From positions 310,001 to 374,000 of the forward strand of contig OZ287709.1 in assembly GCA_965649825.1 (NCBI GenBank): 64,000 bases of DNA. Reading direction: 5' to 3'. Of the stretch, positions 6,949 to 52,776 are shown one piece after another. Made by a program: the position numbers and the translations under genes. Under the pieces are notes generated by a model. It was given only the letters and a program-made list of their open reading frames with translations. It was not told the DNA's origin and did no database searches. Source of the stretch: Penicillus capitatus (lineage: Eukaryota > Plantae > Chlorophyta). The number at the start of each line of letters is the position of its first letter. Position 1 is the stretch's first letter.

Positions 6949-6972
6949 GGAAGGAGAGAGACAAACGTCACA

Positions 6973-32400: not shown

Positions 32401-32515
32401 TAGAGAGTCCCTAAAGTTATCGCGTATCTTTGCGTTTTTACCTGCGCATGTCATAAACGCGCGAAAAACCCCGTCCCCTCGGCGGAGCAGGCATACCCGT
32501 CGCGTATGGGTCCAT
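29500..32515 (-). CDS. P-class PPR protein with two PPR tracts separated by a long Ser/Pro/Thr-rich disordered region (multi-exon)
   Basis: PDTTITNAAISAC, DTITYSSVISAL, PNRVCCNALLAAYAR, PDIVSYNTVMKAC and PSIVTYNTLICAY. Start and 3' end are approximate. Confidence 0.9.
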
Positions 32516-33267
32516 CTCCTGCGCGTCTCTGCGGCCACAGCAACACGTTCTCTTCACGTCTCTGTGCGCGGCGACCTGGGTCTCACCGTCGTCTTCGATA
32601 GCTCGGGTCTTGGTGTACGAGCGCGCCACGGTTTTGGTTGATGGTTGGAACGTAGTGCGACAAAAACAGCGTGTCAACCGCAAAGTTCCCTTTCGCATCA
32701 CCCATCATTAAAGGAGCAAACGCACGTCTCTCGTTGCTCTGCCGCGACGAACGTAGATGACCGACTGACTAGCAGAAGAGATTTAAGGAGAGGACCGTGA
32801 CAGGACTGTCTGAAAGAACGTTGAGGACAGCGGACGATTTCCGACGCGTAAGACGCGGCAGTCAAAGGCGGTTTAGTGACAACGAGGCACGGACACCAGG
32901 TTATAGACACCGCGGCCGATATCGTGATTCATATGCGTCCTCCACAAGTTCGCAGTTGAATTCCTGATAACTTCGTGCTGCCACGTGGATAAGGACGATC
33001 GCTTGATCGATAAGGCATCGCGTTCACAGTGGAAGTTATTACTCAAAGTGAGACCAAAGAGCATAGTTGATCCACTTGTCGATATCCAAACATATTCTCC
33101 ATTTTCTCTCATATTCCTCAGCATGCATATAAACACAGAACAAAGAAAAGAAAAGATCGACGGCGTCTTGGACGCTCAAGAGTTTCAGACAGGCAGACAG
33201 AAAGAAGGTGCAGAGATACGATGTGATATGATATGACTGGGTGTATGTTTGGGCAATGGTTTAGTGA

Positions 33268-34951
33268 TTAGGCTTCGGGTTTGGCCGTTTCCGTCATGTT
33301 CACTTCCATCTCTTCGGCCTTGAGTCGCTTATTACCACGTTGAGATTTGCTCTCCGCTGCAAACTTTACGGAAGCCGAGGCTAATCCCGCTGCGATCTCT
33401 TCAGGCGTATACTCGCCAAGATAGTAATCCTCTTCAGTGACGTCAGGTTTGGCAGAGCAGAACATTCCGCCCCACATGGGGAACCAGATCAAGGCGATGG
33501 TGATGGTGATGCCAATAATCATAAAGCCCATATAACGGATGCCTTCGTATGTTTCCAAGTTATCGGGCTTGAAGAAGATCGCTTGGGTGACAGCCGAGCC
33601 AGCATTGCCACCAGCTCCGACGAAGCCGGACACGATACCCAACGCTCTTTTGGACACGAAAGGCACCACACCATACGAGGCGCCCTCAGAGGCCTGAACG
33701 AGAAGACTGAAGCACATCATGGCAATGATGGTGCCGGCGAGAGTATCTTGCAGAAGACCCATGACAATGCACAGCACACCTGGTGGCCAGTCACACATTG
33801 GTCATTCTTTTGGTGTCCACAAGAACAGAGGTCGTGACCTTCAGCTGTTTGCAATAGGTAAAGTGCCCATAGACGTCCACGCATGCCCCAGATCTTTGCT
33901 GTTTGATCGGAGATTGCGCCGCCGATGGAACGCGCAACGATGTTCATCAGACCAAAGAGTGCACCCAACACGCCAGCTGTTGTCAGCGGAACATCGAACT
34001 GATCAAAAAAGTATTGCACAACGATGTTGTTCATCGTCAGTTCAACGCCGAAGCAGTAACCGTATGTCAGCGTCAGCACCCACATGCGATAGTTTTTCAC
34101 GCCGATCATAAAGACGCCGGATCCTTTTGCTTTCTGCATTTGACCCGACTTGTGCAGCTCTCCATAAGTACCGTCCGGCAGATCTTGGGTAAAAAACAGG
34201 ACGATCAGTCCGACCATGATGTGCATGCAGCCAGGGACGAAGAAGGCATAACGCCATGCGAAAAATGGTTCTTGCGTTCGTTTGATACCTAAACAGCACC
34301 AAGGCCTGTATACTGAGCTAACGTGTGATGTGACAGGTACCGGTGAAGACAAGGGGAAGGAGTAATTGGGTGACCCCACCTCCGAGATTCCCCCATCCAG
34401 CTCCCGTCGCGTTTGCTATCCCCACGATTTTCACATTGAACATCACGGAGCTCCAGAATTGACAGGCGACGAACGTCGCCAGAGAGAAGCCGATCAGAAA
34501 ACGACAGGCGATGAAACCACCAGCAGAGTTGACGAGACTCATTCCAAAAACAGCAGGTGCCGAGAGAAGCATCAAGACTGCATGGCCGAAACGTGGCCCG
34601 ACCAGGTCGCAGACGCTCCCCATGGCCACACGTGCAGCGATCGTCCCAGTCACTGCCGCGATACCAGCATCCGCCAAGTTGCCTTTGTCAAGGTCGACGG
34701 CATCACGTATGATAGGAATCAAAGCCGCAGGGCCAAACGTCGAAACGAACGACGTAAAGAAAGAAAACCACGACGCGTGAAAGGCGCGCATATGGACGCC
34801 GCGAAATATCCATGGCCTAAACAGCGTCGCCTTGTGCTCGCTGTCGACGGGCAACAGAAAGTTGCTCTCGGCATTGCCGGTGTCTTCCTTCGCTGCGATA
34901 ACATGAAACCGACGTCGGGCAACGTCTCGTAGCGAACAGTGTGTTACCCAT
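33268..34951 (-). CDS. NRT2: High-affinity nitrate transporter (NNP family)
   Basis: [17 protein letters not shown] signature, [21 protein letters not shown] and GAGGNAG. Exon 1 is just ATGG. Confidence 0.96.
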
Positions 34952-35196
34952 AGTCTGCGGAGAGGGATGCCAAGACGAGACCGATGTTGGTAACAGCGGA
35001 GTGGTAGAATGGATCTCAGGAGGTGCTTTATAGCCAGGACGCACCGAAAGAGCCGTCGACCTACAAGGGGTGCGTTTATCCGTCTGTTTAGCAATGTGCC
35101 TGCCTCAGAACGGAGATGTCTTTTCAGCGCTACTGCTTATGGGTCGATGCATGATGACCTTTCAAGAAGTGGACTCTGAATCGACTGCGTCGCGTC

Positions 35197-36828
35197 ATGG
35201 TTTTTGACGATGCACAACGCACAGCGACGACGAAGGAGCAGCAGGAACTTGAGAAGAAACTGATTCCAGCGTTACAGACGTTTATCGAGACGGATTCAGA
35301 AAAACGGTTGGAAGGACTCGAATTGAAGCGCGATGCACATGTGGTCTTCTTGCACCGTCACATCGGCAAGCAACTCCCTGAAGCGTTTTCGACCTTGGAT
35401 GCCAGTCAGACATGGGTGGTCTATTGGACATTGCATTCTTTGGCCCTGCTCAACGCACCATTACCGGACAACATTACCTCGCATGACATCGTGGAATTCT
35501 TGAAGTCCTGTCAGCATGAGACGGGAGGATTTGGAGGAGGGCCACAGCAGCTGCCTCATCTGGCGGCGACGTACGCCGCGGTGATGTCGCTCATCACGCT
35601 TGGCACACAAGAAGCGCTGGATGCCGTTGATCGACCGCGACTAGAAGTGAGCAACGATGCATGGCGGCGGACCGTGATGTGACAGCACACTGTCTAGGCA
35701 TTCTTGCTGAGCATGTGTGTGGCGCCAGAGAAGGGAGGCGGATTGACTGTGCATACAGACGGCGAAATCGACATCCGTGGTTGCTACACGGCCATGGCTT
35801 TGGCTCACGTGCTCAACCTTGACATGCACCACATTGCCGAAAGGTGTGGAATGGTTGAATTTATCAAGAAGTGTGTCACGTCCTCTGCTCTTGTGCTATG
35901 ATGACGCGATATGTCTCGTGACAGTTGTCAGTCGTTTGATGGTGGTTTGGGCGGAGAACCAGGAAACGAGGCACACGGTGGTTATACGTACTGTGGATTA
36001 GCCGCATTGGCTCTGCTGGATCGCGTCGATGTGCTCAACGTACCGGCGCTGGTACGATGGGTGGTACATATGCAAGGCTCGATGGAGGGTGGATTCAAGG
36101 GCCGTACACATAAACTCGTGGACGGCTGCTATTCCTTTTGGCAAGGGGCCACGTTCTCTTTGATCAAGGACTACTTTGCCGCGAATAGAGATCCGTGGCC
36201 ACAACTCGTTCGCCCTCTGTCAGACAACACTGAAGATTTGGACGATCTGCCGATGTACGATGCAGCGATCGTTCCGTACTCGCCGCATCTCGAAGCCATG
36301 AACCAAGGCGAGAAGAAGCTAAGGAAAAGGGCAGAAGAATTGGCGCTCAATTTGGAAGAGGCACTAAAGTTCCTCGTCCGAAGAACCGAGTGTGGCGATA
36401 TACCGTTCGAGCGACGTCTCCGTCTCGATCTCTTTCAGTCGACTTTCGAAGAATGCCAAGCAACGATGCATGCCATCGATGTCGCATTCTCCGTCGCTTT
36501 TCCGATCGGATCCGAAGAGCGACGTCAGTTGCCCGTCACACGTATGGAGAACAGTCACGAACACGAGCAGCTCTTTGACAATGTGGGGCTTCAGTTTTGG
36601 ATCCTGGTGCATTGCCAGATGGAGATGGGCGGACTGAGAGATAAACCAAACAAAGCGGCCGATCCCTATCACACCTGTTACTGCCTCAGTGGTCTATCTG
36701 TCGCCCAGCATTACGCTGGCAACGTGCTGGGGCCACAACAGAACACATTGATCGATACAGATCCCCTCTTGAATGTCATTACAGAAAAGGCCAGGGCTGC
36801 TGTGCGGTACTACAAATCCTTGGAATAG
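35197..36828 (+). CDS. ERA1: Protein farnesyltransferase beta subunit
   Basis: LDASQTWVVYW, GGFGGGPQQLPHLAATYAAV, GEIDIRGCY, EAHGGYTYCG, LVDGCYSFWQ and DPYHTCYCLSGLS. Has a plant-type internal insertion. Confidence 0.95.
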
Positions 36829-36915
36829 ATTGTGACAAGCGCGTCAAAGCAGACTGATGCCTCCGTTGCGAATCTCGCGCCCACGTCCTTCACGCCGACG
36901 TCGTTGGGCTGGCGA

Positions 36916-37650
36916 TTAGAGCTTGCCCGCACTCGATGTTGCACGAAATGGCTCAGATGATGCCGTGGATGAAGGCGATCTGCAAAAGCCTTTCATTCGG
37001 AGGTGGGAAGTGGGAAATGGCACCGTCGATTGGAATGCGCCTGTCGTCGCCAGTTCCAGCGAAGCGCTGTCAACTTCCCAAGTCTCTGTCCCTTTCTGCC
37101 ACCACTGCAGCATCGTCGAATACGACAAGCCACATTGGCACCAAACACCTTCGGCAGATGTGGCGGCCGCTCGTCCTCATCGCTCTCGGACACGATCTGA
37201 ACACGAGAGAGGCGTTCATGGTATGAAAGGGGCAAAGAGAGGAACCGCAGGGCTGTCGTCGTTCCCAGAATAGCTGCCGAGTATGATCGTTTCTTCCGTG
37301 CTTCCGCGGGACGCGGGTGACGGAGACGAAGAGCATGATGAGATGTCTCGCATAACGATCGTGCTGATGTTTCGCCTCATTGCTGCGGACACGTGGCAGA
37401 AGTCACTGCTGGCTGTTCTGACTCGCGTTATGTGTGCATACCTCGTTTGCACGTCTTCTTTCTGCCGACGCGTCGTCTGCGACGACAACAGGACCCGTCG
37501 CCACGGAATGGTTGGCGCTCTTCTGCCATCTCCTCTTCCACCGAGACATAACGTCGTCTGCAACGTCCACTTGTGCAAGGCGCTGTTGATGGAGCGATAG
37601 GTAGGTAAGTACTCTTGTCGAGATCGTCTCTTGAGCAACGCTATCAGTTT
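36916..37650 (-). CDS. Hypothetical low-complexity protein; 5' end unresolved
   Basis: Three phase-consistent GT-AG introns join Ser-rich and acidic exons ending WWQKGTETW...AGKL*. No domain recognised. Confidence 0.35.
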
Positions 37651-38312
37651 TCGTGTCAACGACGGACGCGATGAAGTCCCTTCTTGGCAAACGGGCGTTC
37701 GCATGCTGCCCGTGACCGTTTGCGAGGGATGGCGGTGGCAACAGGGGAAGTCAATAGTCGCAAACGCTGTCGTTGACGTGTTCCTCGGCATCGTTGACCT
37801 CTTGTGCAGTGACGCGGCGTTTTGTCGAAACGCTGGAGATATTCCTCACAAGTCGTCTGCCGCGAACGACCGACCTTCTCCTCATCGCATTCGTCGAATC
37901 GCGTCGATCCGGCAAGCCGGAGCAGAAGGGATCAATCGTTTACGGCTTTAACAAGAGAAGCCAACATTTTTATGCACTATGGGCGACACTGAGTAGGAAA
38001 AGTAGACCAGAAAGGCGCGATAAGCTCTTTCCAACTTTCATGTACGGAATCCATGTTCACTCCGAAGACAGTGACTCTGTTTAAGGAACATGCGTCAGGC
38101 GAATCGTAGAATTCAGCAGGCGATGTCCGGCTGCCAGAACAATCGCCAGCAGACGGAGACCTATCGCGACACAAACATGGATCCTCTTAAGCGTGTACCA
38201 GAGAGAGGGTTTCTTTCGCACGTGGCTAAGTGCCACGGATAGCTCGTTGACATGACGAGGACACGACTGAGAGACGTCGTATGCGATGGGCGTGCGATGT
38301 GATTACGCAGAC

Positions 38313-39677
38313 ATGGACGAAGTTTACGCGACAGTGGACGCGTTCGCCGTTCGCTTCATCGAAAAGTGCGTTCACATTATATTGAGAGCACGTTTGTCGC
38401 ACCCAGCTGTCGACCACGATCCGGAGATTGACAAATGGGTATGGCGCATTCGACGTGCCGAAGGACTTTTGACTCCATGCATGGTGCAGTTCAATTTTCC
38501 GGTGGGGGAGGTTGCGACGGCGAAGGAATCGCTCAGGCAATGGAGTCGAACACCACACGCGCCTCTGCTTTTGAATGTCCCCGTCCAGATCTTCTCACTC
38601 TTTCTCACTTTTTTATTCTGGCGCAGATTCTTTGCCAGGAAAAGAACACGACTGAGCAAGAGAAAAGTGAGCGTCGTGCTTAAGTGAGAAAAGTGAGAAA
38701 GTGTGAGATATTTTCTAGAGTTGCTCGAAGTGTGGAAACTGCAGTACAACGAGATTCCTTCGCCTGAAATTCGCTCCCCGAGATCCTATCGCGACGATTC
38801 CTGTTCCATCTACAAGAACATGGTATCGCTGCAGCGTTGGTTCAAACGAGAAGCCACCATCACTGTGGATGCCACTAGATTGTGCTCACCAGGGCACTCT
38901 ACTCTTACGTCCGCCTGATGCCAGCACACACCATCCTCACACACAACGACGATGCTGCTGTTGAGCACGCTTTCTATGGCCGTCCAATGGCGAGGCGTTT
39001 GGTTGGCAGGCGAAAGGAGAGGCGCTTATGGATGTTACGTTCGAGATCACATCGGCCTTGTCAGATGATGAGGGCTCTTGGCGGGAGGTGGTTTCGATGG
39101 GAACCACAGGCGGTCGTCTGAGCATCCATGTCTCCATCCAGGACATCCCTGCTGTCACACAACCATCCCACAGGTCTCTTCGCCGTTCTCCTTCTTTATC
39201 CAACGCAAACGACATCAGGACATCGGCTACTGGAATGGACGCGGCAGAGGATTGGGTGCATTTCGTTCCTAATCACAGAGACGGTGCCACGCGATTTCGG
39301 AACCCCGTGACGGAGCATTTGAAGACGTCTTATGAAAGTATGAAGGCGGCTGTAGTGACCTTTGCTGCGAATCGTGTTCTCAAAAAAGCGTCATCCTTTC
39401 CGCGCAGTCGTCAGACGACACAAACAGACCTGCCGCCCACAGGTGCGCCCCCATTCTGTACGTCAAGGAAACGGCAGATGGTATGGACTGCTGTACAGAG
39501 GAGGCCCGGATTTATGAGTTCCTGCATTTGCTAAAGAGTCAGTCTTCTGATCTGTGTATAGAAGATGACGTCGATGTGGATGTGACATCGAAGCAAAGAC
39601 ACCTATCCCATGAGCTGCAGAGCTTTGACGACATCTGTGCCGCAAACTATGGAGACCCTGCATCGCACGACAACTGA
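38313..39677 (+). CDS. ATG13: Autophagy protein ATG13 (HORMA domain plus disordered tail)
   Basis: FIEKCVHIILRAR, DKW|FNF, LLEVWKLQY, IYKNM|IVLTRALYSYVRLMPAH and GGRLSIHV. Confidence 0.8.
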
Positions 39678-40040
39678 CACTGCTGCCATCCTCGAAGAGA
39701 AGACACGTGCGCATCGCAAAACATCGCCACAAAAAAAGAGATTCAGACGTGACTGAAATCTATCCATGACGCCATTGCAATGCCTTAACAGACTGTTCGC
39801 GTGACCCATCCGTTTTAACAGCAGTGATCCGAATGGTTGACCTGTTCGAGTGGGTCGGGTTGTGCAGATGAATGAACAGGATGTCCAAAATTCGGTATGT
39901 TGTTTGTTGGATGTCTGTTTTGGATGGTGGGTAAATGTCTGACGAATGCAGCACGGTCGCCTCCTCGAACATTCACTCTGATCGAGAAGACACACGTGGC
40001 GGCCATCGCGCGAAGGGTAACTTTCTACGGGCCATCTTTT

Positions 40041-40373
40041 ATTTTCGACCGATGCAGAGGATGTGACTGTTGCCTCGAGACCGTGCTGCGCTACGGCGTT
40101 AGACATGGCGAGCAGAAGCTGCGCCACCGAGATCAGTCACATCACGAAATGTCTTCGTTGACTTGACCGTTTCTGGAGAGAATATTTCGGAACAATGGAC
40201 ATGGCGGACGAAAGTCGTCACCGATGACCATCCTTACATACCGTTGCATCATGCCGGTATCCCATGATGTGACTTGACTTGGCTGACGCATCCTCTGGTG
40301 GCGCTGATGTGACTGCTCGTCGCTTATCATCGTTGTTCAGGCAGCAGTCACATCCTCGACACCGCTCAAGAAT
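40041..40373. repeat. Imperfect 35-bp inverted repeat (28/35; core 18/19) enclosing a cluster of the TGATGTGAC motif
   Basis: Left arm 40041-40075 versus the reverse complement of 40339-40373. Core is gaggatgtgactg(t/c)tgcct. Confidence 0.75.
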
Positions 40374-40818
40374 CAACGCTGTCCGGACAGAATTCCTGAA
40401 AAGCGACTCTGCACTGCACAGACGCTTCATCTTAGATACAGGTTCTGACGGCCGTCACCACACGTCCTGTTTTCGAAATAAAACAGTTCAGCCTGACATG
40501 TGTCCCGAAGAGGACTGCCAAAAACGTTTTGAGTAAGCACGATAGGAATCTGAACCTCAATTACAAATAAATGTCGCGTTTACGATCCGTCTGTTGATTC
40601 CATCAGACGTACCCACATCTGTCCCATCCCCATGCCTGATCAAAACGGAATACTCTTCTGGCGAACTCCAAAGCGAGAAAAACAACATTGCCAGTAGACA
40701 ACACTTCAGCTGCGGCAGAAATACGTTCGAACAGATATCGACAAGCGTTCTTCTCCTGTTCTCTGCGAGACCAACAGGTCATCGAGTACCTATCTCATCC
40801 TTCTCTTCTCACACTTTT

Positions 40819-43326
40819 TCACTCTTGTGCAAGAACATCATTCTTTTCGTAAAACCTGACCAAACGTCTGTAGACATCGGGACGCAGTCGCACGCCCATC
40901 GCTTTCATCTTCTCAAGGTACACCGTCATGTTGTTCAAATCGCCTGTCGTGGTACAGGCATTGATGAGAGAAGCAAAGACAGCTCTACTGCGAGGCATTC
41001 TTTCCCGATTCATGAAACTCCACAGTCGATCGATCGACGATGCAATGAGCTCTTTCGAGATGTGCGTTGGCCGCGAGAGTTCGTCAATAAACGTCGTGTA
41101 GGTAATGGGTGTGGGCCACACTTCATTCTCTTTCATCTCGTCCAGCATCGCAAACGCCTCCTCTACGTTTCTGGCACGTATGAGGATAAGGATGACGACA
41201 TTGTACACGGCAGGGGTCATCGGAACGGCATCCCTCTGCATCTCGCGCAGCAGCTTTCGGGTTTGCTGTACACATTCTTCTCTGTTCGTCTCCCTTATCA
41301 GATTTGCGTAAAGAAGGAGGAGCATGTGGTATGTATGGAAGCTCGGTGGCACGCCTTTCGCCTTCATCTCCTCCAGCACCTCAACTGCTTTCTCCACCAT
41401 TTTCGCACGGTTGCAGATCTTAATGATCGCATTGTACACGACGCCGTTGGCAGGAATGCCGGTTTTCTCCATCTCATCAAGCATCTCTCTGGCGAGCTGC
41501 AAACGCTCTGCGCCATTCTGCTTACATGTCGTCTCGGCATAGAGTTCCATCATCAGCGAATAGGAGCAGACGTCAGGAACGATGCCGTTCTCCTTCATCT
41601 CATCAAACAGTTTGTTTGCCTCCTCTGTCATCCTCGCCCGTACACAGAGCTTCATCGGAAAGCCGTACAGCCAGCTGGACATCGGCAAACCTTTGCTTCG
41701 CATCTCGGCAAGAATTTCCTTGCATTTTGCCAGATGCTCTTCGCTGTTTTCGAAATCGGCGGTTTCGGAGTAGAGACAGAGAAGCGAGTTGTAGACGTGA
41801 ACGGACGATTCTTCTCCGTTCGCCTTGATCTCATCCAACACTCTAAATGCCTCGTCTTTCATTTTGGCCCGGGCGCAGAGCTTGAAGAGGGAGCTGCGTG
41901 TGGACGTCTTGTCCGATATGCCCTCCATCTCCATTTCGCTGATCAATCTCTTGCACAGCCTTAGGTATTTTTCACCGTTTGCCGGTTTCGCCATTTCCGC
42001 ATAGTACTCGATCAGCAGGTTGTACAGTTTGGTATCGAACTCCACTTCATCCAGCTTCATATCTTTCAGAACGGCAGATATGTTCACGACCTTCCCATCG
42101 ATGCACGTCCTCATGAGGGGCTTGTATGTTCGGAACGATGGCTGAATGTTTGCTCTCCGCATCTCGTCCAGCAGCGCTGTGGATTTCCTCAAACGTTCTT
42201 CGCCGTTGTCAGGGTTTGTGTCTTTTGCATACAGCGAAATGATCATGTTGTATGTATGTGTCGTCGGCGGCACGCCTTTCGCCTTCATCTCCTCCAGCAC
42301 CTCAACCGCCTTCTCCGCCATTTTCGCACGGTTACAGACCTTGACGATCGCGTTGTATACCATGCTGCAGGCAGGAACACCTGTTGTCTCCATCTCACGC
42401 ATCAGCTCGTCGCACACCTCCAGATACTCGGCGCCGTTTTCTTCGCCTACTGTTCCGGCGTAGCTTTCCATCAGCATCGTGTAGGCATGAACACTCGCCT
42501 TCACTCCATTTCTCTTCATCTCATCAAAGACATTGCGCGCCTCCTGTGTCATCCCTGCTCGTACACAGAGTTTGATGAGGGTGTTGTATGTCCAGCTGCT
42601 CGGTTGAAATCCATTCTGTCGCATTTGAGTCAAGAGTTTTTTGCTCTCCTTCAGATACCGTGCTCCATTGTGTTTATCGGCGGCGGAAGCATAGACCGCA
42701 ACGAGGGTGCTATACACGGTCGCGGTTTTTTCAATTCCCCGTTCGATCATCCCTTCCACGATTTGCTTCGTCTTCTCCACGTCGCCCGATTTCAGACACA
42801 CTTTCAGTAGAGCGTAATACACGTGCATATCTGGCTTGATGTTGTAGGTCTCTTCCATTTCTGAAAGCAATCGTTCGGCTCGACGCAGGTTCGCTGTCAT
42901 GTGGCAGGTCTCGATCAGTATCATAAAAATGTATCTGTTTGGCATCACTCTTGCACGCTTCATCTCGTTGTACAACTCAAAAACCCTGGAGAAACGTTTT
43001 CGCGTCTTGCTGAATCCGTGCATCAAAGTGGCGAATGTCGACACATCTGGCTGGTATCCATCGCTCTTGAGCTTCTCGAATACAAACTCTGCCTTGCGGA
43101 TTTCTCTCTTTTTCACCAAGTGCACCAAGAGCTTGTTGAATTTCTGCCGCTTCATCATCGATTTGACGGGTTTCTGATCTTTGACTGGATAACAAGGGCG
43201 CATCTGATCGCCTTTCTTAGGCTCAGGGCGAAAATCGTAGAACAAGAAAACGTCGCTTTCGGGTGGCGTTGCTGGCGGCGTCGGCGGCGTCAATCGAAGT
43301 CCCCTCGGTCTCGAAGGCCTGGCCAC
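40819..43326 (-). CDS. Intronless PPR protein (835 aa) with alternating 42-aa and 35-aa motifs
   Basis: About 20 PPR-like motifs (e.g. TYNTLIKLCVRAG, VYNAIVKVCNRAK). Internal DNA duplication with a 921-bp period. Confidence 0.95.
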   Translation of the reverse strand: MARPSRPRGLRLTPPTPPATPPESDVFLFYDFRPEPKKGDQMRPCYPVKDQKPVKSMMKRQKFNKLLVHLVKKREIRKAEFVFEKLKSDGYQPDVSTFATLMHGFSKTRKRFSRVFELYNEMKRARVMPNRYIFMILIETCHMTANLRRAERLLSEMEETYNIKPDMHVYYALLKVCLKSGDVEKTKQIVEGMIERGIEKTATVYSTLVAVYASAADKHNGARYLKESKKLLTQMRQNGFQPSSWTYNTLIKLCVRAGMTQEARNVFDEMKRNGVKASVHAYTMLMESYAGTVGEENGAEYLEVCDELMREMETTGVPACSMVYNAIVKVCNRAKMAEKAVEVLEEMKAKGVPPTTHTYNMIISLYAKDTNPDNGEERLRKSTALLDEMRRANIQPSFRTYKPLMRTCIDGKVVNISAVLKDMKLDEVEFDTKLYNLLIEYYAEMAKPANGEKYLRLCKRLISEMEMEGISDKTSTRSSLFKLCARAKMKDEAFRVLDEIKANGEESSVHVYNSLLCLYSETADFENSEEHLAKCKEILAEMRSKGLPMSSWLYGFPMKLCVRARMTEEANKLFDEMKENGIVPDVCSYSLMMELYAETTCKQNGAERLQLAREMLDEMEKTGIPANGVVYNAIIKICNRAKMVEKAVEVLEEMKAKGVPPSFHTYHMLLLLYANLIRETNREECVQQTRKLLREMQRDAVPMTPAVYNVVILILIRARNVEEAFAMLDEMKENEVWPTPITYTTFIDELSRPTHISKELIASSIDRLWSFMNRERMPRSRAVFASLINACTTTGDLNNMTVYLEKMKAMGVRLRPDVYRRLVRFYEKNDVLAQE

Positions 43327-43688
43327 CGTGCTCCTGTCGATTGTCCCCTAGCGTGATCACCACACCCACAAGTGATGTGACGTTTCACTTTCTCCCTCAT
43401 GCCTCACTTCGTCTTCATGAGCTTCTATACGGGTCATCCGACGCCTCGACTGCCACGTGACTCGGTTCGACCCACACTTCGAATCATCCACCTCCATTAG
43501 TCCCTGTCGCCTCACGATCTCCTCGAGAAAGCGCGACCAGTCGTGTCCTTACCACGAAAAGCTTACTGTTCGGCAGCGCAGCTCTCTGTGTACAAGGCAG
43601 ACTTATTCGAGGGACGAGTTTTGCCGTGGACATCTCGAAAGATCCCGTCCAAGCCGACGGCGACTATGTTGAACGCAGCGAAGATACG

Positions 43689-44885
43689 ATGCGCTGGGCG
43701 AGATGGCCACGAGACGGGATGACGCTCAGATGGCCCGTCGATCTTGCAACGATTTGCCAACGACGGATAATCAAAACGGTCGGAGACAAACCGAGATGCA
43801 TTTGCCAAGATGCGATTCCAATCATGACGCGGATCACGTTGTCGACGATACCTTCGCCACAAATCCCCGCCGCGACACGCCATCGATCGGAGAAAGGAGC
43901 CGTTCAGGGGAGAAAGGAGACGTCGTGTTCTGCACCCGCTACCGAGAACACCCAAGTGCGACGAAGGGATCTGTTGGCAACGGCGGCGCGTGCTTTGCTC
44001 GTCGTGCCTTTTTTGGAGACGCGTTTTTCGGCAGCCTGGGCTGGTCTTCCTGAACAAGTCGGTGATTACCTACCGGCTGCCTCACTTCCGGAGTTCTCTC
44101 TCTTTATCCCCGACGCCAGAAAAACACCAGTACCTATTCTGCGTGGATGCTTTGCCGTCTGCATGTCATCTAGGCACTTCGTGCAGGGACAGTAGATCCG
44201 CAACAGCCCTATCGTTTTGAGCTGCCCGTTACTTTCCGAGAAAGCAAGGTCGCGAATATTCTCAGCGGAAATTACTGCCAGGTTCCGCCCTCCAATGCAC
44301 CTGTGTCTTTCTGTATCCTATCGTTTTTCTAGCCCAGATGTGATGAGCCATGGACAGAAGTGATATTCGAGGATCCAGATTTGGGTCGTATCGCTTTGCT
44401 GGCGTCTCCCTTGAAGAAACTGACAAGCAAAGCGAATGCGAGGATTGAAGACATCGGTCCGCCAGAAGGCATCATTGAATCCATCGGATCCTACGTCACC
44501 GGTCGGCACCTGTCATTCAGTATGTCTGCTATCTCACAAACGGTTTATCTCAGGGACGTTTCTGGATGAAGAGAGTGTGCTGTCCATGGAACAGCGTCAA
44601 CAAGACGACGGCCGTTCGGTCCTGTCACATCATTTTGATCCACAGCCGTCATGCCTTGTGTTTTAGTATTACTACTATGAAGTGGATTCGCCTTATGGAC
44701 TACAGGGGCGGCACTCCTTTACAGCATGCACCACCAAAGTGCCGATCACTAATTATTAAGTGAAACACATGTGTGTGCGGTTTTAGGGTGAAGTTGCTCT
44801 GTTACTGGTGGCGAGTGCCAATGAGAAGCAATGGAGTCGATCGAAAGAGCGACTGAAGCATGTCATGGAATCTTTCAGAGCGTAA
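43689..44885 (+). CDS. PPD4: Thylakoid-lumen PsbP-domain protein, PPD4-like
   Basis: Twin-arginine RRDLL signal. KTPALRAG, KVANILSGNYCQPRCDEPWTEV, IGSYVTG and VASANEKQW. Confidence 0.85.
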
Positions 44886-45941
44886 AGTGTCCTCGCCATG
44901 TAGCTGACACTTTTGTTCAACAGATGTTTTGACTCCATACCTTCTCCTACCCAATCATCGCACATATCGTTACAGACGCGCTCCCGATTTCGGAACGGGA
45001 ATGCCTACCGTATGCACAAGCGTGTGCTACATTCATGTCGCTTCAAACAGAATGCCATGCGTTTGCAGTTTAGATACTAAAAACGGCGGCCGTTCCGGTG
45101 ATGAGATCTTCGCCTCTCTCTTTTTAGGCGCTCTGAGATCGACACGCGTTCACTTCTGTTGACAAGATGCTTTTCTTCGCGATCAAGATCGCCACGCATA
45201 CACGAAGGACCCTCATCTGCCGCCTTTTCCTTAACTACTACGAAAAGGTCATCAACTGGACGCTCGTGTTCTTGTTGACGGAGCTGGCTTCCCATCTGTG
45301 GCCGTTTTATCGGATTCCACCGTATGAAATACACACGCCATAATCAGACATGTCTCTGTCGGCACCCTTGCATAGGACGCCGTCGAGATCGGCGTTGTTC
45401 GTTCTCGAGATATCTCCGAAGACGTATTCTTAACAGAATAAAGTATGAATGACACGGACGTCTCGACGCGTCACACTTTTCTAAAGTAAGGATAGCAACA
45501 ATGGCAACACATGTGGGTAATTGTCAAATCGTTCCTTGACTAACAATGCCGCCATTCAGAAAGGTCACTCACTCACTGTTTATATTGTGCCTGCCCATCG
45601 ACATGAGAACACTGAATTTGTTTTTGTCCCGAAGGACGCAAACGGACTTGAATGCAAACTCAAGAAAGACTACACTATGAACAAGTGTCAAAATGCCATG
45701 TCGGTCATGTCTTGTCAGCGTCTCCACAAAACCGCCATCTCATGTAAACACCTGTGGATACGGTCACATTCATGAATCGATGGCAACTGGGGAGATTTGT
45801 ATTGGTTTAAGAAAACAACCGCATGATCTGAATGGCCGATTGGCGAAAAGCTTTCCATGAAATGTCATTCTCTAAAACGGGATATCGCAGAACATATACT
45901 TTATGTCAACATGACCTAGTGTCACGAACACAATGGGGGTA

Positions 45942-48900
45942 TTACGTGAAAGCGCTATCATTCGAAGCACGTCGCTTCTTGCATCCAATATCTGTCTCTT
46001 CTTCACTCGGTTTGCACTTTCGTGTGGTGAATGTCAAGTTCACGCGGAGAGACTCCTGACGCGAATCTGGATGCATAAACTCGACAACAGATTCTCTGCC
46101 GATCCCAACGCCCTTCGTCGCGTTCACATTCACGACGCCCTTGTTCGCTCGATACGATTGCTTCCCAAGAATGTCCGTCGATACAGCAAGCACGGTGAGA
46201 TCTGCACAACAGACACGTATCACGATAGCGGCATTCATTGTTCGAGTACGGAACGGGCATCGGGGATGCCACCAGTGATGGTTTGGTCGAAGGCGTCTCG
46301 GACTTCGATCTTGATGCCGTCCTCTCGATCGTCCTTGCAGGTTTCGAGCTTCGAGCATGAAGGCAATAGTCTCTCGCCACCTCGATGTTCAGCGATATGT
46401 CCAGATGGCGGGTCAGTTATCACAAGAGCATAGGCACGACTGGCGATGTCCTGCTCGCGCTTCTCAGTCGACGTCTGCGCATAGGAAAGAACCCTAGATT
46501 GAGGGCATGAGGATGGGAGATGGACGTGCCTGGACGAAGTTTTTCTTGAAACGGAAGCAGTCTCTTAGTGGTGGGCTTCTTTTCGTCGCTTGACTGAGGG
46601 GTATCCAGCGTTTCATTTTTGATCGTTCCTGGCCGCAGCCGACGATCACCATTTCTGGATTGGTTATGAACAGTCCGCCGCCCCAGAAGCGAGCCTCGTT
46701 CCCCACGAACGTCATTTTCATTAGATGAAAGAGACGGCAGGGCTGGACGACAAGGCCAGAAGATATACAGTCGGATTTCTTCTCGTTGCTCCACGTGCCA
46801 GAGATACTGGCGAAGAGGCCACCTGTACCAGACCATCAGAAAATGCTTGTCGAGAACGGGCATCTTACCACCAACCAATGCACGGTTCTGTTTAAACGCC
46901 ACTCCAAAGAAGCGCACATCGGCCATGGCCTTCTCCGGAATATCATCCAGCGCCAAACACATCCCGCCGCCGCCGCCATTGCCGCAAAGGGATGACGAAG
47001 TTGCGTTCGAATTCATCTTCCCGACAGCCAAAAGCGATCGCGAGGCACTCCCGGCATAGAGCACTGCCCAGATCTGCTCAGCATCGACCGCTTGGTTTTG
47101 AGTAAAGCGAGAATGTTTCATCTAACACGCAGGCAGGACAGTTGTGAAGGAAAGGGGCAAAGGGCGTGTTTGAGCATACTTGGAAACTGTTTTCTTTCTG
47201 TCGATTGGCATCGACGAAGACGCCGCCGCCGGACACTGCTGTATTGTTCACAAATTCATTCCACCAGTTTTCTTTGGCCGATGCAAATCGCACTTGAGCT
47301 GCTGCTCTGAAAGCAGCTCCGCCTCCATGTACGGCAGCATTGTCTCGGAAAGAACACTGTTCGATGTCGACGTCGTAAAAAGAGTCCAGGACAAAGAGGC
47401 CGCCGCCGGCTTCCGTTGCTTGATTGTTCGTGAAATAAACGTTCCTCAGTAACAGAATTCCGCATCCGGCGCAGATCAGAGCGCCGCCGTCCTTGGCTGA
47501 ATTCCTGGCGAACAGATTTTGCTCGCCAGGTGCTTCTTCTCCGGCTGCGTCTAATACCGGTGCTGCCGTGAACTGTGCTCCGTTCGTCAACAGCAGAGCT
47601 CCACCAAGATCCACTGCCGAATTCTCTGTCCATGTGGTTCGCAACGCACGAATGTCACCGGTGTTCCGGAAAACGGCGGCTCCTCCAGCTTCACCTGCCC
47701 AGTTGTTCTCAAAGGTGCAGCCATCCAACGCGATCGGATTCTGAAAAAGAGTGACCATGTGGAGGGCGCCGCCACTCGACCGCGCACGATTGTCAGTAAA
47801 GATCGATGTCAAGATATCGAACTTTGCCAGTGTGGTCGCAGAGGAAGCGAAGTAAACGGCCCCTCCCAGATGGTCTCCTACATTATCGTACCTACTCTTC
47901 TTAGCAGCCGCCGCCACGTTGTCTCGAAAAAGGCATTGTGCAATGACGACAGAGATACTGTTCTTCAGTCCAATGAGCTCTGTGGCGTCCAGGCTTGCGT
48001 ATATGGCGCCGCCGCTTGTGGCACGGTTGGATTTAAACTCGGAATGGGTCACCGTAAGATTCCCAGCCGATATCGCTGCAATAGCGCCGCCTCCGTTTGC
48101 AGGAGATTGAAAGACAAAGTAACGGCTGCGTTCAATCAGGAGGCCGCTTTCCTGGTAGATCAATCTCTGGAATCCCTCTTCCACCACTGTGTTCTTGACA
48201 AACCGGCAATTCGAGACATTCAGCTCCGTTCTCGCACCAGCAACGTAGATCGCGCCGCCATTTGAAAGGGCACGATTGTCTGTGAAGTTCGTTCCCATGA
48301 CTGTCAGTGCACACTGCTCGCCAAAGATAGCGCCACCCATGGGCGATGCGTTCTCTCTGAACACGCTGTCTCTGATCGTCACATCGACGTCAGCCGCATC
48401 ACACTCTTTGTCAAAACACCCTCCAACATAGAGAGCTCCACCCGGCGTGTAGCTGTCTTTGTTTGTATTGTCCTCGAAAATCACGTCCTCGAAGACAATG
48501 CCTGCAACGAGGGAATCGCTGCGGCCATGGTTAACGACGACAGCTGGATAGCCACGGCATCCCTTCAGTGTCATGGACGATACTGTGATGTTTCGTGCCC
48601 TGGAGGAAACGACATCGAGAAGGACAAGGCGCTGTAGTCGTCGAACTTGATCGTGAGAATGGGATCATCCTCTGGACAGCTGAGGATTGTTTTGGCCGAT
48701 GTACCAACGAGATGTATGTTAGGTGTGTCCATCAACAGGCTCTTGGACAGCTTGAACGTGCCATCGGCCAGAATGACAGTGTTTCCCGTTTTCACATTGC
48801 CCAGTGCCGTCTCCAATTCTTTGACGGTGGACAGACGGTTCTCGCTGCTTCGCCGGAGAGAAATACGTCGATCTACAATCAGAGATGCGTTTGGACAGAC

Positions 48901-49105
48901 CGGTGAAGTTTCATGCGTTTGCGCGAACAGATAGTGTGCGATAGCGCGAATACCGGTGAATCGTTTTAGCAATGTCCGTCAAATAGCCGTACGCGTGATA
49001 CGCACTTGCGGGGGGCGGTACAAGACTCGCTCTTTCGTCGCCGAAGATGAGGCGCCATTCACTCAGCAGTACGACGACAAAGACAAACAGATGACGGAAA
49101 CGCAT
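45942..49105 (-). CDS. Large secreted right-handed beta-helix protein with Pmp-like GGA(I/L)/FxxN repeats
   Basis: Signal peptide MRFRHLFVFVVVLLSEW and more than ten GGAI/GGAL plus FxxN.A repeats. C-terminal IEVRDAFDQ. The 3' end is uncertain. Confidence 0.85.
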
Positions 49106-49784
49106 GCTTAACAATTTTCAGGGATTCGAAAAGGAACGGAACAGGTCTGATGACGCTTAGAATGGCATGTGCCCAATGGGCGACGCTTAAATCCACCGCG
49201 GGGAGTTGATGTACTGAATCCAGCACAGGCTCTTGGCTGCTTCTGAAACACGTGTCAGTTTTTGGAAACCCGTGGCGGCGTTGGTGCCAATGACGCCAAA
49301 GACGTTCTATCAATGTCCATAGACAGCAGAGCATAACCGTCTCCCTTTGTCCCACGCGTCTTTCCCCGAGATTCTGCTTTTACAAGCAACGAACAACGAC
49401 ATCCCGCGCAAAGAAATATGACCATCTGTGAGACATCTATAGAAAAAGTATGGTCCGTACGACAGCGTCCAATAATGTGGTGTTTCTCTCGTAAAATGAA
49501 CGCGGCCTGCACACGGATGAAATTCTCGACGAAACGTTTTTCCACTTCGCTGACAGAGAGCGTTTTCGAACGAGAGACCGAAGAGCCCACTAGCGTCTCC
49601 GTTCACTATGGATCACCGATCATCGTTTTCGGCAGGATGGTCTGTTCCGGTTGCTTATCTTTTCGGACACCTCGGTCCGCGGAGAGCGAGGGATGTCTGG
49701 ATTGTACGACATTTTCGCAGGCTATCAGTTAAATTGCGCCTTTTAACATCTCTAGCCTCACTTAACCGTAGTCGACCTTCATTC

Positions 49785-51112
49785 ATGTTGCCCCGTCTTC
49801 TGCGGCATCTCCGTTTTGTAAAAGACCTCACGACGCAACATCGTCTGCTCGGACGACACAGTTTCCAAACGCATGCCGTGTCTCGCGCTCAGATCGATCT
49901 CTACCACGATGTGACGCCCTTTGACGGCGGCGTCCCTCGAGAAGTGATCTCTTTTCCACCACCGCGCCAGACGCAACACGAAGATCCCTCCACTCCATTC
50001 CCCTCCTTATTGCTACCGACCCGCAAACGTCTCAGTCAATCCAACATCTCCGTCTCATTCTTCCTGATCGATAAGAGACCGGGAGAACTCACCGATCGGA
50101 TGGCGCTGTTACTGTCAAAGACATTCTCCTACAAAGCCTTCCTCATTGCCAGCAGCGGAAGTCTGGATATCATGGCATCTGGTCTGGTTCTGTTCACCTG
50201 TGGCTATGGACTGGGTTTTTTGGATGCATTCGATCGTCTACCGTGCACGTACAGAGGTGTGCTGAAACTCGGTCAAACCAGCGAGTCCTATGATCTAAAG
50301 ATGCCGATCGACCGACACCGTCCATGGAAACACGTAACAGGTGAGGGCCCGCCCAATGCGTTTGATCGAAAACGAAGTGCCCTCTGTCAGAGGCGCAAGT
50401 CCAGAAGGCAGCCAAAGAGTTTGTTGGCGATATTCTACTGCCACCAGCACCGATCCATGCTTTTAGAAGCAAAGATCCCCAAATGCTCTTCAAACTGAAG
50501 GAAACGGAAGACATGTGTGTTCGTCCTCTGCCTTCACTCGCTGCTCTGAGTGATGCTGTGGCTAGGTCGGCGAAACCGGCCACGGTGTATGCCTTTGATA
50601 TGCACTATCCGTCAACCCCAAGTCAAGAGATCCCGTTCGAGCTTGTCTGCGATTGCGTGGTGGAACCCGCGTCTCTGATCCATGCCTTCGGGGAGAAACT
50701 GGGCTGCGATGCGTTACTGTGTGATCTTCAGAGAGTGGCCATTGGAGAGTACACCACGGAGCAGGCTTGGAGTTTCGCACGGATTTTCAGTGCCTTCGGC
50801 AGAGCCTCGCGTGGATCTATCTTCCAACCAGACAAGCTGCGTCGGTTTCGGCTGATGCACAGCGGTGTGCGGTATACGAAACGTGTTTTCGGATGCAATT
50901 GGCATCGGGAATTCACTCCGGTAAAGAAAAAGAAGATATTGCCTTATGAGAAACGAAGGAGAAAGAGGGAAAGAGAGTTCATGGAACGCGAAGGACTTAT
51001 CTCTGAAGAAGATATCATGAAACGACGTCTGAAGAAGAAGGCTGTCAAGTTGGTCGCCAATATGAACGTGACGACTGTCGAAGAAGTCTATCAACGCATT
51101 TTGGAAGAGTAG
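49785..51112 (+). CDS. TruB-family pseudouridine synthase-like protein, probably organellar (1 intron)
   Basis: SGSLDIMASGLV (catalytic Asp retained), YRGVLKLGQTSESYD and LCDLQRVAIGEY. Presequence-like N terminus. Confidence 0.8.
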
Positions 51113-51577
51113 ATGGCGACAACGTAGACAGATGTTCATAGAGAGAACCTGTTTTGTCGAAAACAGCCCCTCTCTGTACCATTCTTCCTTGTTCGACCCG
51201 CACGACTGCTGCGCTGCAGACGTACACTCGAACTCGACACGCGTTGCCAGTTGGATCGGCGATAGAGCTGGAATGTCAACATTTCTCAAACGGCGAACAC
51301 AGATTTGGAGATGCGGGATGTAAACAGTCAAGCGCTCTGCGCCAGTCTTTGTTCTGACCTCCCATCCAGGTGATCTTTTTGATCTGTCAAGAATCGTTGT
51401 GTTTCGAAACATCGATCCGTTTTGCTTTGCCAGTGTTCATGTATCAAGTCTGAAGTCGGCGGTATTGACGGTCTGCGTGTTGTAGTCCATTCTTTAGCTA
51501 TGCATTTTCTTATCGGACATTCGGTCCTCGTTCGCGTCTTATCCTCGGCGCTGTCGGACGCGACATTGCCAGAAAGA

Positions 51578-52750
51578 ATGCGTCACGAATGGATGTCGAC
51601 GACGGGACGTTCGTGCGTTACCGTAACGCAATCTCGTAGCGGAATCGACAACGATATGCGAAACACCGGCGCCGAGATGGATTTTGCGCGTGACGTCTCG
51701 CACTCCACGCGTTTTGACTCCCGGACCTCCTCTCTCAGAAAACACAACACCGTGCAGTGCGGCAGTGACCCACCCGATCACACGAAGCCGGACCGTCGCT
51801 CAGTGCGCTACACCAAAGACGCACTGCTCTCTGTGTATCGCGATCTCCGAAACGACACATCCACACTTTCCGTTCCTTCGAATGCTCAGATTCCCATCCC
51901 TTTCCGAAAGGGATCGAGAGTCGCACTCGAAGACTCTCGTTGCGCGTCGTGGATTTGGATCACCCCTGGAGGCGCGCCGTTCTTTACGTTGACATATGAG
52001 GAAGTACGGGAACGGTTGAACAAGGGCGTCATTCAGCCGAGCGATTATCTCCTCCCCACAAGCGTCGTCCGGCAGTGCGGAATTCGAGCATCCGATTTTG
52101 ATAAAGTCGACATCAAGAGGGACAATGGAGTCGGTTCGCTGAAGCCATCCATCCCTTCGCCGATCAGGAAATGGCGGGACATACATTGGCAAGAGCTCTG
52201 TAAAGTACTGGACAGCAACGAGGTGTGTTATCTGGACACTTCCAATCAACTTCAGGGTCCGTTCGAGAAGAAGCAGATTCTACAGTGGTGGGCACGTGGT
52301 TACTTTCCCAAGAATCTCCACGTTCGATCCAGCCACGCACAACATTTCGTCGATCTTCGCGTTCTTTTGGCCAAGTGGTTTTCGAGTGAAGCCCTCTGGC
52401 ACGCATCGACCGTCTCGCACTCGAGCTGTACACAAGAATTCCTTGTCCAGCAGTTTTGCAAGGGAAAGTTGGACAGTCAGGCTCCCATCATACCATCTGC
52501 ATTGGGAGGCACCGAACAGACATTGCCGGCTCTCTATCTCATGGTCCACTGGCTTCCTTTCTGCGAGACGTGGTCCGTGAAGGAGGAATCCTATGGCGTG
52601 ACGTCTCTATCGATTCCAGGCGCTTTTGATTTGTGGCTGCATCGCTACCGAACTCAGAACGGTCGTCTGTTGGCCAGACCTGTGACCTGGGGAGGAAATG
52701 GTTACATGGCAATGGAACACATGATGGAAAGCTACAGCTTCATTGAATAA
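51578..52750 (+). CDS. GYF-domain protein (intronless)
   Basis: YLDTSNQLQGPFEKKQILQWWARGYFPKNLHVR, and the RYTKDALL motif seen in GIGYF/EXA1-like proteins. Confidence 0.75.
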   Translation: MRHEWMSTTGRSCVTVTQSRSGIDNDMRNTGAEMDFARDVSHSTRFDSRTSSLRKHNTVQCGSDPPDHTKPDRRSVRYTKDALLSVYRDLRNDTSTLSVPSNAQIPIPFRKGSRVALEDSRCASWIWITPGGAPFFTLTYEEVRERLNKGVIQPSDYLLPTSVVRQCGIRASDFDKVDIKRDNGVGSLKPSIPSPIRKWRDIHWQELCKVLDSNEVCYLDTSNQLQGPFEKKQILQWWARGYFPKNLHVRSSHAQHFVDLRVLLAKWFSSEALWHASTVSHSSCTQEFLVQQFCKGKLDSQAPIIPSALGGTEQTLPALYLMVHWLPFCETWSVKEESYGVTSLSIPGAFDLWLHRYRTQNGRLLARPVTWGGNGYMAMEHMMESYSFIE

Positions 52751-52776
52751 AAACAACAAACCCATGGAACGCGTTT

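Follow-up and report, generated by a model that had tools for sequence, protein, structure and literature searches.

Does the Penicillus capitatus genome encode a PPR protein built on motifs outside the accepted catalogue? Sequence-specific RNA binding in plastids and mitochondria is chiefly the work of PPR proteins, which also underlie designer RNA-binding tools, and the motif catalogue in general use (P, L, S, E) is land-plant derived. An open reading frame at positions 40819-43326 (minus strand) of a 64,000-nt stretch of P. capitatus DNA, here called the window, was originally predicted to encode a lineage-specific PPR subclass, in which 42-aa and 35-aa motifs alternate and the superhelix geometry or recognition code is altered.

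We compared the window protein with the PPR family models PF01535, PF13041 and PF13812 (Pfam clan TPR). It matched PPR_2 at 8.6e-93 (304.8 bits, cut-off 30), PPR_3 at 7.3e-87 (285.9 bits) and PPR at 1.1e-43 (144.9 bits). Its AF2 model, like the other AF2 model described here a single-sequence prediction, had a pLDDT of 81.6 and contained 41 helices. The best Foldseek match was maize PPR10 (4m57, E 6e-18), followed by PAP2 and designer PPRs. By sequence and model, the window gene product is a PPR protein, predicted to form an alpha-solenoid.

Our segmentation reproduced the predicted succession of motif lengths (42, 35, 42, 35, 42, 34, 42, 35, 42, 35, 42, 35, 42, 35), with positions 41107-42720 (-) corresponding to exactly aa 203-740. 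All seven long motifs contained Tyr10 and Asn18, the Asn standing in the contexts HNG, ENG, DNG, ANG, ENS, QNG and TNR. The CxRAxM signature ascribed to the short motifs was complete in five of the seven; motif 3 reads CIDGKV and motif 7 LIRARN. Further motifs flank these dyads on both sides (Table 1), and the whole window protein comprises about 20.5 repeats. The four N-terminal motifs are collinear with the first four of the Caulerpa protein P0003. In the AF2 model, the 41-aa motif of the eighth dyad has a helix A of 11 aa and a helix B of 18 aa.

Table 1. Features of the PPR gene in the window (aa numbering of the open reading frame).
Feature	Position	Strand	Details
Proposed exon 1	43553..43633	-	81 nt, MSTAKLVPRISLPCTQRAALPNSKLFV; carries the likely true start codon
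Proposed intron	43348..43552	-	205 nt; GTAAGG donor, YAG acceptor
Exon 2	40819..43347	-	remaining CDS, 842 codons + stop at 40819-40821; open frame
Pro/Arg/Thr-rich N-terminal part	43204..43347	-	upstream of first in-ORF ATG; conserved in frame with ortholog
Four ordinary N-terminal PPR motifs	42721..43146	-	35, 36, 36, 35 aa; aa 61-202; segmentation, AF2 helices
Seven 42+35-aa dyads, one of them 42+34	41107..42720	-	aa 203-740
Long motif L1	42595..42720	-	aa 203-244
Long motif L2	42364..42489	-	aa 280-321
Long motif L3	42133..42258	-	aa 357-398
Long motif L4	41905..42030	-	aa 433-474
Long motif L5	41674..41799	-	aa 510-551
Long motif L6	41443..41568	-	aa 587-628
Long motif L7	41212..41337	-	aa 664-705
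Eighth, degenerate dyad	40879..41106	-	41 + 35 aa; aa 741-816; segmentation
Terminal half motif	40822..40878	-	aa 817-835; segmentation, AF2
Internal DNA repeat copy, dyad 6	41303..41564	-	74% identical to 42224-42485; 921-bp spacing
Internal DNA repeat copy, dyad 2	42224..42485	-	core (aa 340-354) apparently converted by dyad 6, window lineage

The gene had been described as intronless, with a Pro-rich N terminus that is not an obvious transit peptide. Comparison with the ortholog supported neither description. An upstream exon, the GTAAGG donor and the 205-nt intron are conserved in both species. Exon 1 matches that of the ortholog at 75 of 81 nt, the intron at 79%. The exon 1 model is based on this conservation, and non-coding DNA in the region is 77-83% conserved as well. 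Three of the six differences in exon 1 are synonymous and three non-synonymous, and the ATG is kept. The length, donor and acceptor position of the intron are equal in the window and in L002, and removing it places exon 1 in frame with the large open reading frame, for a full protein model of 869 aa. The first ATG of the window reading frame (Met42) is Ile in the ortholog; protein P0001 matches the window reading frame identically from aa 42 on. These data suggest that the PPR gene probably consists of two exons and that its start codon is supplied by the upstream 81-nt exon. Conserved in frame, the Pro-rich stretch lies within a presequence-like N terminus of ~75 aa, which abounds in Pro, Arg, Thr, Leu and Ser, contains a single acidic residue among its first 50 aa and shares the in-frame blocks GTIDRSTVA..SRPRGLRLTPP..PPESDVF.FYDF with the ortholog. 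It likely resembles an organelle presequence. In the AF2 model of P0003, the 72 N-terminal residues of this Caulerpa homolog are disordered.

We then characterized the long motif itself. The family consensus, taken over 40 long motifs, is Y3, Y10, A11, N18, Y22, L23, C26, L29, E32, M33 and G37. The corresponding ungapped 42-column profile (x2-Y-x6-Y-A-x6-N-x3-Y-L-x2-C-x2-L-L-x-E-M-x3-G) matched the window protein seven times at 45-55 bits each, scores that are partly by construction since its own motifs are in the profile. When motifs were compared singly with Pfam single-repeat models, none of the seven long motifs reached the cut-off; the three short motifs tested in this way scored 44.1, 30.8 and 27.9 bits against the PPR cut-off of 25. 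No individual long motif matched Sel1 at E<=1, and one gave a sub-threshold TPR_8 match (17.6 bits, cut-off 25.7). Pfam alignment of the long motifs showed a shift of +7, with the PPR signature carried by both halves.

The extra residues had been placed as a 7-aa insertion between the two helices. The AF2 models distribute them over a wider A-B turn and an additional helical turn where helix B begins. In the long motifs, a helix A of 13-14 aa and a helix B of 17-20 aa are joined by a turn of 3-6 aa, compared to 13/3/13 (helix A/turn/helix B) in the well-modelled short motifs, and helix B begins at position 19 in five of the seven long motifs. The independent AF2 model of P0003 has the same long-motif anatomy, with a helix B of 16-20 aa. 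The long motif can be pictured as a PPR motif plus 7 residues, in which the A-B turn would grow from 3 to about 5 residues and helix B would gain one N-terminal turn (17 aa versus 13), while helix A would keep its normal length. The invariant Asn18 directly precedes helix B, often as N-x-x-E, and may act as a helix N-cap; Tyr22 and Leu23 may provide packing for the added turn.

Among described motifs, P measures 35, L 35-36, S 31 and E 34 aa, and PLS proteins are composed of P-L-S triplets, usually followed by E1/E2 and sometimes to often by a DYW deaminase (PMC12733224). As predicted, the 77-aa unit and its 42-aa motif match no P, L, S or E length. P-class arrays are essentially all 35 aa, whereas seven 42-aa motifs and one 41-aa motif alternate with 35-aa ones in the window protein. 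It otherwise resembles P-class proteins (maize PPR10; Chlamydomonas MCA1 and MRL1) in its tandem helix-turn-helix PPR motifs, predicted solenoid, lack of a C-terminal catalytic domain, candidate presequence, and N/S/T at position 5 and D/N/S/T at the last position of most motifs. The difference lies in the core, where every second motif is 42 aa long with a predicted, capped one-turn extension of helix B. With the land-plant PLS class it shares a regular mix of canonical and variant-length motifs in which the long variant is more degenerate, but its unit is 42+35: segmentation of the window protein found no 31-32-aa motif, hence none of S length, and no triplet order, and no E or DYW family was among its Pfam matches. 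OPR, HPR, TPR and Sel1-like repeats (38-40, 37, 34 and 36-44 aa, respectively) likewise form helix-turn-helix solenoids, some with repeats longer than 35 aa; the window long motif instead carries the PPR signature. This signature and the lengths of 42 and 35 separate the array from OPR, HPR and Sel1-like proteins, OPR and HPR being set apart by description.

We found the 42-aa motif, as an ungapped profile match, in 27 of the 384 PPR proteins retrieved. The carriers are the window gene, its ortholog, Caulerpa lentillifera paralogs and environmental sequences; no land-plant or fungal PPR protein among the 384 had the motif, and C. lentillifera was the only named species with it among the proteins retrieved. 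The Caulerpa and environmental matches were first obtained with a profile built solely from the window, the ortholog and three motifs of Caulerpa P000292. A search with the family alignment returned mostly generic plant PPRs and one further long-motif Caulerpa paralog, g282.t1. The Caulerpa paralogs (EukProt EP00210 P000292, P003343, P004126 and P004061, and model g282.t1) share the 42-aa motif, with the consensus xTYxxMIKCYEKLGDPxxxxAYLKPCLDLxxECEQxG, and the predicted helix-B extension, and P000292 also shares the four ordinary N-terminal motifs. They differ in being ~25% identical, in having the long motif mostly at every third position (112-aa triads) and in a less strict N18. Across the relatives, one motif in every 2, 3 or 4 is long, with amplified units of 77, 112 and 148 aa. 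Other environmental proteins contain a second 42-aa motif of different signature, with an Asp cap.

Matches of PDB chains to the 42-position profile all required a 7-residue deletion, that of the designer PLS protein PLS9-PPR included. We considered mL104/rPPR9 and mS39 as solved relatives of the long motif and rejected them: the dyad profile had matched 75 residues, and the 42-column profile gave no mL104 match. Our literature search, which had the green-algal survey of Tourasse et al. 2013 outside its reach, found no published description of a 42-aa PPR motif. The proposed lineage specificity is borne out as far as the narrow known distribution goes, namely Caulerpa and environmental relatives with no land-plant or fungal carrier in the retrieved set. 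The 42-aa variant is apparently new, and a modest twist on a very well known family.

The protein of the syntenic ortholog (P0002) shows 71% identity and aligns gap-free over the full set of 14 motifs, the 34-aa one among them. This agreement and the recurrence of the 42-aa motif in Caulerpa and environmental proteins speak against a chance pattern. Together with a dN/dS of 0.25 overall, the gap-free alignment indicates that the layout is conserved and under selection; it has stayed free of indels at a dS of 0.68. By part, dN/dS is 0.12 in helix A of the long motifs, 0.55 at their positions 12-19 and 0.16 in the short motifs.

The original prediction also took near-identical DNA at a 921-bp spacing as a sign of expansion by internal duplication. 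We confirmed the near-identity, with identical 22-mers at 41349 and 42270 inside an internal repeat of 262 nt. It is no sign of a recent expansion, since all motifs are already present in the ortholog. Dyads are 25-45% identical to one another, save for the pair 2/6, and Tandem Repeats Finder detected no DNA-level tandem array in the gene; the array is therefore old. In both species, the reciprocal best dyads are 1 with 5 and 2 with 6. Dyads 1-2 and 5-6 are old block duplicates. In 30-nt windows, the copies within the window reach up to 97% identity, compared to 80-83% for the two copies of the ortholog and 90-93% for the dyad-6 orthologs. To judge from these identities, a tract of ~60 nt is homogenised by apparent gene conversion, in the window lineage only. 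The array may have grown by duplication of multi-motif units, with local gene conversion later.

Next, we examined the positions that read or hold RNA in canonical motifs. Six of the seven short motifs have Arg at the phosphate-binding Lys13 position; in three of the seven long motifs, Glu stands instead of the Lys13 that contacts phosphate in P motifs. Of the 14 dyad motifs, 11 carry N, S or T at position 5 and 12 carry D, N, S or T at the last position. Compared to the ortholog, 14 of 20 motifs keep the residue at position 5, 10 keep that at the last position and 7 keep both; the pair is the same in four of the seven short motifs and one of the seven long motifs. In their single-motif Pfam scores, their Arg at position 13 and their retained code pairs, the short motifs look like canonical readers. 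Overall, code positions are only average or worse in conservation against the 71% identity of the whole protein, which is not easily reconciled with canonical-code reading of a fixed target.

Jointly, these observations are best explained, and in our judgement probably so, by a nuclear two-exon PPR protein of ~869 aa with helix-B-extended long motifs and putative binding to organellar single-stranded RNA. Known PPR structures have helix A facing the RNA. The predicted target would be an organellar single-stranded RNA about 18-20 nt long, lying along the helix-A surface, as in P-class PPR stabilisers. Specificity would come mainly from the short motifs, with the long motifs as looser readers or spacers, a split comparable to that in land-plant PLS arrays. 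On every second repeat, the extended outer helices could create a ridge that might serve for docking. By analogy, the L motif of PLS proteins, the main contact for the partner MORF9 (PMC12733224), suggests such a docking role for the long motif.

The poor retention of code pairs (7 of 20) could also be expected of a scaffold PPR associated with an organellar ribosome or RNA polymerase, which would bind protein or structured rRNA without a code and use its outer helices as contacts. The plant mitoribosomal PPR mL104/rPPR9 (9evs_1v) has the top target-normalised TM-score among natural proteins (0.62 over 390 columns) and matched a whole 75-residue dyad of the profile, and the PEP-associated PAP2 is among the top structural matches. 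We nevertheless regard a scaffold as unlikely: the mL104 match is lost with the 42-position profile, which no PDB chain fits ungapped, the residues at position 5 and the last position are mostly those of RNA-reading P motifs, and no part of the long motif is under stronger constraint than helix A. A broader proposal holds that 42+35 arrays are a separate algal 'long-short' PPR class, independent of land-plant PLS, found in siphonous green algae and, in an Asp-Pro-cap form, in other marine protists. Its periodic helix-B ridge would recruit a partner protein or set the superhelical pitch, with recognition cofactor-dependent or not one motif per base; we consider this doubtful.

Strict alternation over the whole array, conserved in two species, and the amplification in relatives of multi-motif units with one long motif each are what one would expect if the dyad were the recognition unit, the insert altering repeat rotation or rise and leading to another register (e.g. 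skipped bases) or a modified code. The AF2 models argue against this, since the insert falls at the A-B turn and the helix B start, and helix A is unaltered in length. In known PPR-RNA structures, that edge lies opposite the base-contacting position 5 and last position. The variable spacing of the long motif in relatives likewise implies that a fixed dyad register is no property of the motif, and we give this reading little credence. Least of all do we favour the view that the regularity simply reflects recent tandem copying of a 231-bp unit with a meaningless 21-bp insertion. The dyads do resemble each other and the 262-nt repeat exists, but the divergence of all pairs other than 2/6, the lack of a DNA-level array and the indel-free layout speak for an old, maintained structure. 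Moreover, Asn18, Tyr22, Leu23 and Cys26, in or near the insert, are kept in a family only 20-25% identical, and the Asp-capped motif of other environmental proteins has the same 42-aa length. Such an origin is highly improbable.

The conserved, regularly spaced 42-aa variant shows that mixed-length PPR arrays evolved in algae too. Standard PPR annotation will undercount motifs and misplace code positions in proteins with 42-aa motifs. A natural, apparently well-folded (as predicted) lengthening of helix B may also offer a possible handle on designer scaffolds; by itself, the 42-aa variant leaves the accepted view of PPR function unchanged. We also considered and rejected orthology to HCF152, orthologs of which were common among the matches. 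The rice protein P0037 is without the 42-aa motif and has motif spacings of 33-40 aa plus one unresolved interval of 113 aa.

We observed that residues 203-740 of the minus-strand PPR ORF (the window protein) divide into 14 clean motifs of 42, 35, 42, 35, 42, 34, 42, 35, 42, 35, 42, 35, 42 and 35 aa, so that the seven alternating long/short dyads of the original prediction are recovered with its own cuts. The product is unmistakably a PPR protein, with Pfam matches to PPR_2 (8.6e-93), PPR_3 (7.3e-87), PPR_long (1.6e-62) and PPR (1.1e-43). Tyr10 and the invariant Asn18 are present in all seven long motifs, the latter in the contexts HNG, ENG, DNG, ANG, ENS, QNG and TNR. The CxRAxM signature described for the short motifs is entire in five of the seven and incomplete in the other two.

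Features of the PPR gene, its modelled motifs and the surrounding DNA (window positions unless marked aa)
Feature	Position	Strand	Details
PPR ORF	40819..43326	-	835 open codons
Dyad region	41107-42720	-	residues 203-740 of the ORF
Four ordinary motifs, N-terminal to dyads	aa 61-202	-	35, 36, 36, 35 aa
C-terminal to the seven dyads		-	degenerate eighth dyad (41+35 aa), then half motif
Short motif, well modelled (AlphaFold2)			helix A 13 aa, turn 3 aa, helix B 13 aa, loop 6 aa
Long motif (AlphaFold2)			helix A 13-14 aa, turn 3-6 aa (mostly 5), helix B 17 aa in 6/7 and 20 aa in 1/7, loop ~6 aa
ORFs antisense to PPR gene	40594-41964, 42256-42810, 42901-43356	+	up to 456 aa
Second PPR gene	29514-32410	-	PPR_2 4e-24, 4e-20
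GC-rich block	6001-10000		58-61% GC
ORFs of GC-rich block	8816-9736 (+), 8903-10594 (-), 6378-7538 (-)		long, overlapping
Chlam_PMP ORF	47078-48574	-	498 aa
Ordinary eukaryotic nuclear genes around PPR gene	11560-12594 (+), 18908-20398 (-), 33717-35094 (-), 35911-36828 (+), 49608-50498 (+), 51422-52750 (+), 54645-55481 (+), 61116-61823 (+)

AlphaFold2, run without an alignment, modelled the window protein as a confident solenoid (mean pLDDT 81.6, 41 helices), with maize PPR10 as its best Foldseek match (4m57, E 6e-18). Of the seven long motifs, five have a helix B that begins at position 19, right after Asn18, and five carry Glu at position 21. The N-x-x-E pattern is a classical capping box, and Asn18 and Glu21 would form one here. 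Helix B is likewise long (16-20 aa) in a separate model of P0003, a Caulerpa homolog with the same 42-aa motif, whose 72-residue N terminus is disordered. Judged by helix lengths in these models, the 7-aa insert is a predicted capped one-turn extension of the outer helix together with a wider A-B turn, rather than a floppy loop. The edge that would carry this insert lies opposite the base-contacting residues in known PPR-RNA structures.

Accepted motif lengths are 35 aa for P, 35-36 for L, 31 for S and 34 for E1/E2 (PMC12733224). Designer PPRs, PLS9-PPR and CCM1 in the PDB match the 42-column profile end to end over 33-35 residues, and therefore with a deletion of ~7 residues; PPR10 and the remaining chains gave partial matches only, and no PDB chain with an ungapped match was found. 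Nor was a published description of a 42-aa PPR motif found in the literature searched, which did not cover the main green-algal PPR survey. The mitoribosomal proteins mL104/rPPR9 and mS39 were considered as solved relatives on their 75-residue matches to the dyad profile and failed the 42-column profile test. Scanned singly, all three short motifs examined score 27.9-44.1 bits, above the Pfam PPR cut-off of 25, and none of the seven long motifs reaches it (best 20.2 bits; three without a hit). Pfam alignments of long motifs, where they exist, take in either a single half or the full motif displaced by +7, and routine annotation would consequently count too few motifs in such proteins.

A 77-column dyad profile searched against 1.84 billion representative proteins matched 30,702 PPR proteins at E<=0.001. 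We scanned 384 retrieved PPR proteins with a 42-column HMM, and only 27 carry the 42-aa motif as an ungapped full-length match: the window protein, its ortholog, Caulerpa lentillifera proteins (EukProt EP00210 P000292, P003343, P004126 and P004061; model g282.t1) and sequences from JGI, Logan and ENA. None of the land-plant, fungal and amoebozoan PPRs among the 384 gave an ungapped match. The 42-aa motif is a distinct PPR motif variant, and its known distribution is narrow, which bears out part of the original interpretation. The consensus of 40 family long motifs is Y3, Y10, A11, N18, Y22, L23, C26, L29, E32, M33 and G37. Long motifs recur every two, three or four motifs in Caulerpa and environmental relatives (units of 77, 112 and 148 aa), so strict alternation belongs to the window gene and not to the motif. 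Alternating 42/35-aa arrays also occur in the JGI sequences P0149 and P0253. Their signature differs (xTYxALINAHAKRGKETRD(P)xxxxxAExxxxEM) and has Asp or Asp-Pro in place of the Asn-Gly cap; the same structural solution may have arisen there independently, or these arrays may be very distant versions of it.

The database protein P0001 is identical to the window protein from aa 42 on, and the syntenic ortholog P0002 is 71% identical; both are encoded, with the same neighbouring genes, on long contigs from two metagenome assemblies at ENA. Because the alignment with P0002 is gap-free across the entire PPR array, the 34-aa motif included, and dN/dS is 0.25 at dS 0.68, the dyad layout is old, conserved and under purifying selection. 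dN/dS is lower in short than in long motifs (0.16 and 0.31); within the long motif it is lowest in helix A (0.12) and highest at positions 12-19 (0.55) and in the terminal loop (0.60). The window and the syntenic contig L002 are collinear over ~20 kb (window 33000-52895) at 77-83% DNA identity. Non-coding DNA in this interval shows the same 77-83%, similar to the PPR coding sequence (78.5%), and conservation alone is therefore a weak guide to function there.

Comparison with the ortholog also suggests that the gene, which had been read as intronless with a Pro-rich N terminus that is no obvious transit peptide, probably has both an intron and a presequence. The Pro-rich stretch lies upstream of the ORF's first ATG (aa 42) and is kept in frame between the two genes; Met42 is Ile in the ortholog, whose annotated start is a GTG picked by a prokaryotic gene caller. 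Further upstream, an ATG-initiated 81-nt segment conserved in both species, MSTAKLVPR(I/R)(S/G)LPCTQRAALPNSK(L/P)FV, runs up to a GTAAGG donor. The predicted intron behind it measures exactly 205 nt in both, with a YAG acceptor that puts the reading frame back in register. Between species the proposed exon 1 shows 93% identity (three synonymous and three non-synonymous changes) and the intron 79%. The full protein is likely 869 aa long, and its first ~75 aa, rich in Pro, Arg, Thr, Leu and Ser with few acidic residues, fit a putative organelle presequence by composition.

Near-identical DNA at a 921-bp spacing had been taken as expansion by internal duplication. Pairwise identity among dyads is 25-45%, save for the pair 2/6, at 62% in the window and at 53% in its ortholog. 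In either species, dyads 1/5 and 2/6 are each other's best match, which points to an old block duplication offset by four dyads, or 921 bp. Recent expansion fares less well. The ~60-nt tract concerned (aa 340-354) reaches 97% identity between the copies within the window, against 80-83% between those of the ortholog and 90-93% between the dyad-6 copies of the two species. Gene conversion in the window lineage accounts best for this near-identity.

The window protein would most likely bind organellar ssRNA in the manner of P-class stabilisers. Counting for such binding are N, S or T at position 5 in 11/14 dyad motifs, D, N, S or T at the last position in 12/14, and Arg in place of the phosphate-contacting Lys13 in six of seven short motifs. 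Between orthologs, code pairs agree in only 7/20 motifs (short 4/7, long 1/7), and Glu stands at position 13 in three long motifs; both observations count against a fixed target under the canonical code. This pattern would fit a division of labour like that of PLS proteins, with short motifs as the main readers and long motifs as looser readers, spacers or a docking ridge, by analogy with the L motifs that bind MORF9 (PMC12733224).

For the ORFs on the strand opposite the PPR gene, the likeliest reading is stop-poor mirror frames of repeat-coding sequence, not genes. A second PPR gene, ~8.4 kb downstream of the first one's stop and also in L002, probably contains introns, since it is spread over at least three ORFs; it has canonical PPR matches only and no 42-aa motif. 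The GC-rich block (~50% GC elsewhere) has long ORFs on both strands and yielded no Pfam matches or tandem repeats. Another ORF encodes Chlamydia polymorphic-membrane-protein repeats (Chlam_PMP 5e-28) with a beta-helix match, unusual on a eukaryotic nuclear contig, and has a syntenic copy in L002. Neighbours of the PPR gene include a sugar/MFS transporter, a second MFS transporter, a plant-type purple acid phosphatase (N and C domains), a prenyltransferase beta-type subunit (several ORF pieces), TruB-like, GYF-domain and EXS/PHO1-like proteins, and COP9 signalosome subunit 5.
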